A program made the translations under genes and the position numbers. A stretch of DNA of 64,000 nt from Macrostomum lignano (Eukaryota), in the NCBI GenBank assembly GCA_002269645.1, contig NIVC01000953.1, forward strand, positions 1 to 64,000, given 5' to 3'. Below the pieces are notes generated by a model that did no database searches, had not been told where the DNA came from, and saw only the letters and a program-made list of their open reading frames with translations. Below, in pieces: positions 44,801-47,800 of the stretch. How positions within the stretch are numbered: position 1 is the stretch's first letter; the number at the start of each line of letters is the position of its first letter.

Positions 44801-47800
44801 GACACTCCTGATACTGATATCTGACACTCCTGACACTGATATCTGACACTCCTGACACTGATATCTGACACTCCGGACACTAATATCTGACACTCCTGAC
44901 ACTGATATCTGACACTCCTGACACTGATATCTGACACTCCTGACACTGATATCTGACACTCCTGACACTGATATCTGACACCCCTGACACTAATATCTGA
45001 CACTCTTGACACTGATATCTGACACTCCGGACACTAATATCTGACACCCCTGACACTAATATCTGACACTCCTGACACTGATATCTGACACCCCTGACAC
45101 TAATATCTGACACTCTTGACACTGATATCTGACACTCCGGACACTAATATCTGACACCCCTGACACTAATATCTGACACTCCTGACACTGATATCTGACA
45201 CTCCGGACACTGATATCTGACACCCCTGACACTGATATCTGACACTCCTGACACTGATATCTGACACTCCTGACACTGATATCTGACACTCCTGACACTG
45301 ATATCTGACACTTCTGACACTGATATCTGACACTCTTGACACTGATATCTGACACTCCTGACACTGATATCTGACACTCCGGACACTGATATCTGACACT
45401 CCGGACACTGATATCTGACACTCCTGACACTGATATCTGACACTCCTGATACTGATATCTGACACTCCTGACACTGATATCTGACACTCTTGACACTGAT
45501 ATCTGACACTCCGGACACTGATATCTGACACTCCGGACACTGATATCTGACACTCCTGACACTGATATCTGACACTCCTGACACTAATATCTGACACTCC
45601 TGACACTGATGTCTGACACTCCTGACACTGATATCTGACACTCCTGACACTGATATCTGACACTCCGGACACTGATATCTGACACTCCTGACACTGATAT
45701 CTGACACTCCTGACACTGATATCTGACACTCCGGACACTAATATCTGACACTCCTGACACTGATGTCTGACACTCCTGACACTGATATCTGACACTCCTG
45801 ACACTGATATCTGACACTCCTGATACTGATATCTGACACTCCTGACACTGATATCTGACACTCCTGACACTGATATCTGACACTCCTGACACTGATATCT
45901 GACACTCCTGACACTGATATCTGACACTCCTGATACTGATATCTGACACTCCTGACACTGATATCTGACACTCCTGGCACTGATATCTGACACTCCTGAC
46001 ACTGATATCTGACACTCCTGATACTGATATCTGACACTCCTGACACTGATATCTGACACTCCTGACACTGATATCTGACACTCCTGACACTGATATCTGA
46101 GACTTCTGACATTGTGACACCTTAACCGCCATTTACCTGTAGACCGTTAGACACTCTAGTTAGTTTGGTTAATTCCTCAATTATTCTCTGAATCCACGCG
46201 TTCATCTCGAGCCTTCGTTCTCCTGCCAAGTTAGTAGTTATTAATTACATTTCAGTTACTCGTAGCAATAATACGCTCAAAAAAATTATTCACAGTAAAT
46301 TCACGGCAAATTTACAATACTACTATTAGTAAAACAAAAAAGCATGTTATTTTTTAAACGAAATCACTCAATCAATAATACCACAAGATCTTCGGTCTCA
46401 GCGCTGTTCAGCTTGGCCTCTGATGCCAGCTGCAGCTTCCAGTATTCGATATCCTCAACTCGTTTGCCTTCACAAGGTTATGTCCAGTGTAGGTTGACAT
46501 TAGAGCGGGGGGATTAGATATGAAAACAGATCGCAGGTGACATGAGAACAGATCGTAGGTGACATGAGAACAGATCGTCGGTTACACGAGAACAGATCGT
46601 AGGTGACATGAGAACAAATCGAAGCTGACACGAGAACAGATTGTAGGTGACATTAGAACAGATTGTAGGTGACATTAGAACAGATTGTAGGTGACATGAG
46701 AAAAGATTGTAGGTGACATGAGAACAGATTGTAGGTGACATGAGAACAGATTGTAGGTGACATGAGAAAAGATCGTAGGTGACATGAGAACAGATTGTAG
46801 CTGACACGAGAACAGATTGTAGGTGACATGAGAACAGATCGTAGGTGACATGAGAACAGATCGTAGCTAACACGAGAACAGATTGTAGGTGACATGAGAA
46901 CAGATTGTAGGTGACATGAGAACAGATTGTAGGTGACATGAGAAAAGATTGTAGCTGACACGAGAACAGATCGTAGGTGACATGAGAACAGATCGTAGGT
47001 GACATGAGAACAGATCATAGGTGACATGAGAACAAATCGTAGGTTACATGAGAACAGATCATAGGTGACATGAGAACAGATCGTAGGTGACATGAGAACA
47101 GATCATAGGTGATATGAGAACAGATCGTAGGTGACATGAGAACAGATCATAGGTGACATGAGAACAGATCGTAGGTGACATGAGAACAGATTGTAGGTGA
47201 CATGAGAACAGATTGTAGCTAACACGAGAACAGATTGTAGGTGACATGAGAACAGATCGTAGGTGACACGAGAACAGATTGTAGCTGACACGAGAGCAGA
47301 TCGTAGGTGACATGATAACAGATTGTAGGTGACATGAGAACAGATCATAGGTGACATGAGAACAGATCGTAGGTTACATGAGAACAGATCATAGGTGACA
47401 TGAGAACAGATCGTAGGTGGCTTGAGAACAGATCGTAGGTGGCTTGAGAACAGATCGTAGGTGACATGAGAACAGATCGTAGGTGGCTTGAGAACAGATC
47501 GTAGGTGACATGAGAACAGATCGTAGGTGGCTTGAGAACAGATCGTAGGTGACATGAGAACAGATCGTAGGTGGCTTGAGAACAGATCGTAGGTGACATG
47601 AGAACAGATCATAGGTGGCTTGAGAACAGATCGTAGGTGACATGAGAACAGATCGTAGGTGACATGAGAACAGAGTAGGTGATAACGACTTCTGAGGTTG
47701 AAGCGAAGTCAAATTCCTAGCGAATCAATCAAAAGATTGATAAAGTAAATCACAATTGCGAACTCAACTCAGCTTCTCTGTCACGTCAGCCTGTCTGACC

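Follow-up and report, generated by a model that had tools for sequence, protein, structure and literature searches.

A tandemly duplicated 86-nt exon in a tektin gene of Macrostomum lignano and its counterparts in other spiralians

Tektins build a hyperstable filament bundle inside ciliary doublet microtubules, and the different bundles of different cilia in one animal have so far been ascribed to gene paralogues. A 64,000-nt stretch of the genome of the flatworm Macrostomum lignano (contig NIVC01000953.1 of assembly GCA_002269645.1, positions 1 to 64,000, hereafter the window) raises the question whether one tektin gene can make two versions of its product by splicing. The gene lies on the minus strand at 50697-38837, and its product is 100% identical to the top protein match of the window, P0001 (BOX15_Mlig031898g1, Macrostomum lignano tektin, 488 aa). 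It has ten exon positions, all with AG/GT borders, if two adjacent ones are both counted: Ea, which is annotated, and Eb, which an initial annotation made from the sequence alone had proposed as its mutually exclusive partner. From the comparisons that follow, Ea and Eb form a genuine exon cluster, duplicated long ago and arranged for mutually exclusive use, chance being effectively excluded; the odds that Eb is currently used as a coding alternative in this gene appear about even. The elements on which the argument turns are these:

47769-47947, minus strand: exon 2 (E2), with a phase-1 end (…AAG CTG A/GTTGAG, the slash marking the border); the Pfam Tektin match begins here
46382-46467, minus strand: exon Ea, 86 nt, phase 1 to 0, the form in all annotated transcripts
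46223-46381, minus strand: Ea-Eb intron, 159 nt, GC 0.26, without minisatellite
46230-46236, minus strand: TACTAAC branch-site-like heptamer, its branch A 9 nt ahead of Eb, conserved in gene copy L001
46137-46222, minus strand: exon Eb, 86 nt, phase 1 to 0, the candidate alternative exon, intact in gene copies L001 and L002
42381-42518, minus strand: exon 4 (E4), with a phase-0 start (EHIQVLES…), coding for the end of helix 1A and loop L1

The arrangement proposed at the outset was reproduced throughout: two 86-nt exons of phase 1 to 0 with GT-AG ends, 159 nt apart, lying between an E2 donor at 47769 and an E4 acceptor at 42518. The two 29-aa peptides are also as first given, each being read with an upstream base A since E2 ends at 47769 in phase 1. 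As 86 is two more than a multiple of three, and the donor before each exon is of phase 1 and the acceptor after it of phase 0, the mRNA can be translated throughout only if it contains exactly one of the two. Inclusion of Ea only or of Eb only gives an open frame of 488 codons in either case; with both, translation stops after ENEGSR, at codon 175 (of 517); with neither, it stops at codon 160, 21 codons on. The claim that one of the two, and only one, is productive is borne out by these four readings. As to the splice sites, Ea does have the weak acceptor attributed to it (...gtgaAG/G, a gAAG end), with donor GTG/GTattatt, while the borders of Eb, acceptor ...TACTAACttggcAG/G (gCAG/G) and donor CAG/GTaaat, are closer to consensus than those of Ea. 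The "perfect branch site" of Eb needs qualifying: the TACTAAC heptamer is present, but its branch A lies unusually close to the acceptor, and its role may have been overstated.

Is Eb, then, a tektin exon at all? Ea and Eb are alike at 4/28 residues and 31/86 nt, and since a pair so near saturation says little of itself, homology was tested by comparison with the family and not of the one exon with the other. An ungapped profile of 29 columns was made from 94 distinct segments, homologues taken from other genes and other species. Among the 43,363 stop-free 29-aa windows in the six frames of the 64 kb, it places Ea first (35.0) and Eb second (8.3); the third-best window (5.6) is low-complexity sequence. 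A full-length tektin hidden Markov model (HMM), built from 116 homologues with this gene left out, gives 171.4 for the Ea form and 152.2 for E2+Eb+E4; shuffled versions of Eb (500) score 132.9 +/- 4.1, and the best of them 152.1. Taken alone this test would be weak, since among 2,314 open AG…GT candidates in the E2-E4 intron some minisatellite-derived decoys ("MSRVSDIS…") reach 149.7, too small a margin to convince; the whole-window segment profile was used in its place. Pfam Tektin (PF03148; cut-off 34.3) scores 368.6 bits with Ea and 356.7 with Eb, covering profile positions 1-380 of 383 with either, and starts at profile position 83 only, with loss of the N-terminal third, when neither exon is included. 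Eb retains the invariant R3, W10, E17 and L28 and is hydrophobic at 6/8 core positions. The view of the initial annotation, that a tektin exon was duplicated in tandem to give the two, is upheld by the span of the Pfam match with either form and by the rank of Eb on the segment profile.

Counterparts of the pair are found in molluscs. RefSeq records of mollusc "tektin-3(-like)" contain isoforms X1 and X2 of equal length that differ only in the 29 residues matching Ea/Eb. Pairs with 100% identity outside this segment come from 10 mollusc species or records: Magallana gigas (P0009/P0008), Crassostrea angulata, C. virginica, Ostrea edulis (P0017/P0019), two Saccostrea species, Haliotis asinina (P0013/P0021) and three Mytilus records (P0032/P0036 for example). 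The alternative exon of Mytilus (GERVADIAYLKAELNTEINLMEQEMVNLE; isoforms P0036/P0037) is without the near-invariant tryptophan; loss of family-invariant residues from a second copy is thus not unique to Eb. Genomic loci were also scanned with the 29-column segment profile. Two copies of the segment are present in the following:

L003, oyster: copies at 2207-2292 and 2683-2768
L005, abalone: copies at 5035-5120 and 5542-5627
L006, Lingula (L. anatina tektin-3): annotated copy at 1654-1739, unannotated copy at 2183-2268
L008, annelid Ridgeia (R. piscesae tektin): unannotated copy at 3823-3908, annotated copy at 4317-4402
L004, conserved M. lignano tektin-3/5 paralogue (P0004 gene): annotated copy at 1772-1857, unannotated copy at 2068-2153 (Eb'), which encodes ERFSDIELWTDCLTDEGRRQLDSMNSLE
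L007, amphioxus Branchiostoma belcheri: copies at 4151-4261 and 4312-4422, 111 nt each, with a 50-nt intron between

In the first five of these the tandem copies are all of 86 nt with AG/GT borders, and double inclusion always leads to a stop. On this comparison of gene sequences, every gene of the tektin-3/5B clade examined, whether of mollusc, annelid, brachiopod or flatworm, carries the exon pair at this same position. The M. lignano gene shares with the mollusc tektin-3 genes its clade, the 86-nt exon, the positions and phases of the introns, the tandem layout and the stop on double inclusion. It differs in several respects: the canonical copy is downstream and the divergent one upstream in molluscs, and the order is the reverse in M. 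lignano; mollusc copies are alike at 12-18/28 residues, as against 4/28 for Ea and Eb; the intron between copies is of ~390-420 nt in molluscs but of 159 nt here; and the mollusc alternatives are listed as isoforms, whereas Eb is unannotated. Nor do the deposited models for Lingula, Ridgeia and the other M. lignano paralogue include the second copy. Eb and Eb' share the loss of aromatic 9, the loss of K/R 11 and an N at position 26, states that are only suggestive of orthology.

The amphioxus locus repeats the theme in another form. As in M. lignano, it is this part of helix 1A that occurs in tandem copies (GERVADIHFWKNEL… and GERVSDIHFWKREL…), but the exon borders differ, 111 nt being a multiple of three and 86 nt not, and the two copies are identical at 24/28 residues; the pair is probably an independent duplication. 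As the 50-nt intron is too short to splice, exclusion there would be steric and not by frame. The deposited amphioxus model P0079 ("regulation of brood size", 535 aa) fuses both copies, by which helix 1A would gain 37 residues, and is probably a mis-annotation of a sterically exclusive pair.

Vertebrates provide the closest solved protein, TEKT3 (bovine, 7RRO chain C0), with which the 29-residue segment aligns without gaps. The fish TEKT3 locus (L009), unlike that of M. lignano, has a single copy of the segment, no introns at these positions and no alternative exon. PDB scores of the gene product are highest for Tektin-3 (289 bits, 7rro_C0), followed by Tektin-5 (236), Tektin-4 (206), Tektin-1 (192) and Tektin-2 (127). 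A neighbour-joining tree puts the gene, on a long branch, inside or beside the spiralian cluster to which Platynereis "tektin 3/5B" belongs. Judged by these alignments it is a spiralian tektin-3/5B gene with a long branch, which leaves its exact position uncertain. Its identity is 46% with the conserved paralogue of M. lignano, itself ~60% identical to mollusc and annelid genes.

What would keep the two exons apart in M. lignano? Three kinds of mechanism are familiar. Steric exclusion applies where the distance from donor to branch point is less than ~50 nt; among the pairs described here that holds for amphioxus only, the Ea-Eb intron being 159 nt long with TACTAAC at its 3' end. Choice by RNA structure is exemplified by the docking and selector sequences of Dscam exon 6. 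Competing RNA structures likewise choose between the mutually exclusive exons of ATE1 (PMC7797038). The Ea/Eb pair would give the same outcome as these two, one exon of a tandem set, but differs from them in that the 408-nt unique-sequence island which holds both exons (46112-46519, flanked by two 22-bp minisatellite arrays) contains no complementary docking and selector sequences. Pairings of this kind, which the initial annotation had suggested looking for, could not be detected in the island, the search not extending to long-range pairing with the minisatellites: there is no inverted repeat of >=9 nt in 46100-46530, and the island folds no better than its shuffles (minimum free energy z = +1.34), both of which tell against a dedicated switch. 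In the absence of an RNA fold or inverted repeat, and with a 159-nt intron long enough to splice, the reading frame is the only demonstrable basis for exclusivity.

The third mechanism fits better. There is a known class of tandemly duplicated, mutually exclusive exons in which frame and mRNA decay maintain the exclusivity (PMC9013439, PMC5740500). Ea and Eb resemble it in being adjacent and homologous, equal in length and phase and not a multiple of three long, and in that double inclusion or skipping is unproductive; they differ in that their mutually exclusive use is predicted from genomic sequence and in that a regulatory element was not found. On its sequence features the pair belongs to this class, which is itself well known. 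On the best explanation, to which as a whole we give an even chance, Ea and Eb are the local copy of an old tandem duplication of an 86-nt exon coding for residues 140-168, and Eb is still spliced in this gene. Homology, architecture, frame logic and the recurrence of the arrangement across phyla are established by the sequences; for the continued splicing of Eb the odds are even or slightly lower. Exclusivity would be imposed by the reading frame, and unproductive mRNAs would presumably be removed by nonsense-mediated decay; Ea would be the major form in whole animals and Eb a minor or cell-type-restricted one.

The consequences of such a swap can be gauged from the AlphaFold2 model of P0001, the Ea form. 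It has helices at 89-196 (108 aa, one break), 207-270, 291-399 (109 aa) and 408-470, of which 89-196 is helix 1A (predicted local distance difference test, pLDDT, ~79-96) and 207-270 helix 1B, with loop L1 at 197-206 between them. This agrees with the four-helix rod (1A, 1B, 2A, 2B) described for tektins, in which helices 1A and 2A are of ~108 residues (PMC8595878). The alternative segment, 140-168, is placed by the model at the centre of helix 1A, where the part that packs on helix 1B in the three-helix core starts. Between Ea and Eb the buried positions are kept (R3, hydrophobic 7, W10, hydrophobic 14/18/21, E17, L28) and nearly all exposed residues are replaced over about eight helical turns. 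The swap would accordingly be expected to change a binding surface and not the fold, and so to alter the partners of the filament surface. A link of the two forms to types of cilium, as first suggested, is conjecture.

The question that remains is whether Eb is used in this gene today, and here a number of observations weigh against its use. All 4/4 annotated M. lignano copies of the gene in GCA_002269645.1 (P0001, P0121, P0122, P0123) use Ea. A 314-aa query representing the Eb isoform matched just the Ea form, at 92%, and no protein containing Eb; the 40-aa genomic open reading frame (ORF) around Eb had 0 matches by phmmer among 1.84 billion representatives. (A 134-aa E2+Eb+E4 query also found no match, but it missed the annotated Ea protein too, a failure of word-index sensitivity and not evidence.) The one available test of selection on Eb, made between gene copies where the original claim had proposed related species, went the same way. 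Between the window and copy L001 (~2% synonymous divergence) the coding sequence is under purifying selection, with proportions of synonymous and non-synonymous differences, pS and pN, of 0.021 and 0.0053; Eb has 3 non-synonymous changes (N>K and I>H among the residues) and 0 synonymous ones, pN 0.044, very small counts on which it looks to be evolving at about the neutral rate, close to the local intron rate of ~2%. Eb is also without the near-invariant aromatic 9, K/R 11, E13 and E24, and its segment-profile score is low beside the 35-78 of other exons. Nor does the paralogue come to its aid directly, Eb and Eb' being identical at 6/28 residues and pairwise scores being uninformative on orthology.

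Some of this evidence is weaker than it looks. The M. lignano annotation was made from RNA-seq assemblies with an isoform-fraction filter of 0.75, under which any isoform short of that fraction of the major one is dropped by design (PMC5730564); that Eb is missing from the annotation therefore counts for little. The ORF of Eb, its AG and GT and the TACTAAC heptamer are all intact in the ~2% diverged copy L001, and its GC content is 0.43 as against 0.26 in the adjoining intron. In the paralogue, two gene copies differ by 1 synonymous change in Eb' and by 10 substitutions and 3 indels in the adjacent 210-nt intron; the counts are small, but on them Eb' looks constrained. Finally, the divergence of Ea and Eb to saturation means that Eb was maintained by selection for most of its existence and, if dead, died recently. 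Mutually exclusive use, as originally claimed, has strong indirect support in the spiralian pairs and the mollusc RefSeq isoforms, but none from an Eb product, which was not found in the collections searched.

Three other accounts of Eb have to be set against its use as a coding alternative. The most substantial, which we consider a distinct possibility though one that falls appreciably short of even, is that Eb is a recently retired exon: the cluster would once have been mutually exclusive, as in molluscs it would still be, only Ea would now be used, and Eb would be drifting as intron sequence. This would account for Ea alone in the annotated transcripts of four gene copies, for the missing Eb protein, for non-synonymous changes between copies at or above the local intron rate, for the several lost family-invariant residues and the low profile score, and for the occurrence of all this in a paralogue on a long branch whose identity to the conserved copy is only 46%. 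It sits less well with an ORF, two splice sites and a branch-like motif intact in both diverged copies, with a base composition that has not decayed towards that of the intron, with the core heptad pattern kept in Eb, with splice sites stronger than those of Ea, and with the apparent constraint on the equivalent exon of the paralogue; and saturation between Ea and Eb (31/86 nt) would require the retirement to be recent.

Alternatively Eb might act mainly as a "poison" exon, its regulated joint inclusion with Ea bringing in a stop six codons into Eb and so, through nonsense-mediated decay, tuning tektin dosage instead of yielding a second protein. The stop at codon 175 of 517, a splicable 159-nt intron, strong Eb splice sites and the want of anything detectable to block double inclusion would all suit such a role; but a poison exon has no need to code for tektin-like sequence, and Eb keeps its length, phase, W10 and heptad pattern, the mollusc equivalent is annotated as a coding alternative, and no two-exon transcript is on record. 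We regard this account as improbable. The least credible of all, to our minds hardly worth entertaining, is that Eb is a chance open AG…GT segment of coiled-coil-like composition with no homology to Ea. The slight likeness of the two exons (4/28 residues, 31/86 nt) and the closeness of the minisatellite decoys to Eb in the full-HMM test (149.7 and 152.2) are what might be said for it. Set against these are the second place of Eb among 43,363 windows on an independent profile, the failure of any shuffle (0/500) to reach its score, a length and phase equal to those of Ea at 159 nt downstream, and a second copy at the same place in every spiralian locus examined, that of the other M. lignano paralogue included.

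If use of Eb as a coding alternative is real, splicing would join gene paralogues as a way to filaments specific to a type of cilium, through a conserved swap of exons at the centre of helix 1A, and a defined 29-residue surface would be the part that matters for partner choice. The wider result is the more interesting one, an exon pair conserved across spiralian phyla and paralleled in amphioxus. On a broader view, which we advance tentatively and rate a little below an even chance, the middle of helix 1A in tektin-3/5B would be an ancient spiralian-wide exchangeable module, a frame-enforced pair predating the split of molluscs, annelids, brachiopods and flatworms and re-invented sterically in amphioxus; it would provide different filament surfaces for different cilia (sperm, locomotory, larval, protonephridial/sensory), and in M. 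lignano it would be represented by Eb, at work in a minority cell type. No paper describing alternative tektin exons was found in the searchable literature, and the main evolutionary survey of the tektin family makes no mention of splicing, isoforms or exons. The original remark that mutually exclusive splicing has not been described in tektins is to that extent correct for the searchable literature, but isoforms encoding the swap already sit in the mollusc RefSeq records as X1/X2. In practical terms, the second copy is not included in the models for Lingula, Ridgeia and both M. lignano paralogues, and one amphioxus model is probably wrongly fused.

The remaining exons of the tektin gene, and the two repeat arrays that flank the Ea-Eb island, are as follows:

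50459-50697, minus strand: exon 1 (E1), ATG at 50697, donor CA/GTAAGT, an exact match to the P0001 N-terminus
46520-47682, no strand: 22-bp minisatellite, 53 copies, occupying the E2-Ea intron
42558-46111, no strand: 22-bp minisatellite, ~162 copies, occupying the Eb-E4 intron and beginning 25 nt past the Eb donor
42207-42277, minus strand: exon 5 (E5), gene model
41397-41540, minus strand: exon 6 (E6), gene model
40776-40998, minus strand: exon 7 (E7), gene model
40189-40343, minus strand: exon 8 (E8), gene model
38837-39068, minus strand: exon 9 (E9), carrying the stop codon

Each tektin intron except that between Ea and Eb is dominated by a minisatellite of its own, with periods of 14, 20, 22, 26, 28 or 32 bp and up to ~162 copies. 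The lengths of the arrays vary greatly among gene copies, and the Ea-Eb island is 97-100% identical throughout: the E2-Ea intron is of 1301 nt in the window and in L002 and of 2577 nt in L001, the Eb-E4 intron of 3618 nt in the window, 3529 nt in L002 and 1105 nt in L001. Copy L002, which encodes P0122, has a 2-nt gap in exon 7 (L002 12309-12529), and its annotated product is truncated, at 318 aa; the copy is either a degenerating duplicate or an assembly error. A similar out-of-frame stretch is seen in UniProt entry P0002.

Elsewhere in the window, an ORF with a reverse-transcriptase domain (RVT_1, 107.8 bits; YADD motif) at 52862-53782 on the plus strand, ~2 kb upstream of the tektin start, is probably a fragment of a retrotransposon of the type without long terminal repeats (non-LTR). 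Also on the plus strand, the ORF at 60231-61379 contains the N- and C-terminal domains of ATP:guanido phosphotransferase (252.9 bits) and probably represents an arginine/creatine-kinase-type gene, and that at 9775-11109 contains the ion-channel pore domains Ion_trans_2 and Ion_trans and is probably an exon of a potassium-channel-like gene. Extreme GC skew (up to +/-0.7) is seen at 4001-6000, 20001-24000, 34001-36000 and 48001-50000; the skewed stretches coincide with simple or low-complexity repeats, such as those of GERGGE type and the poly-T/Y-coding runs near 54.8-55.5 kb.

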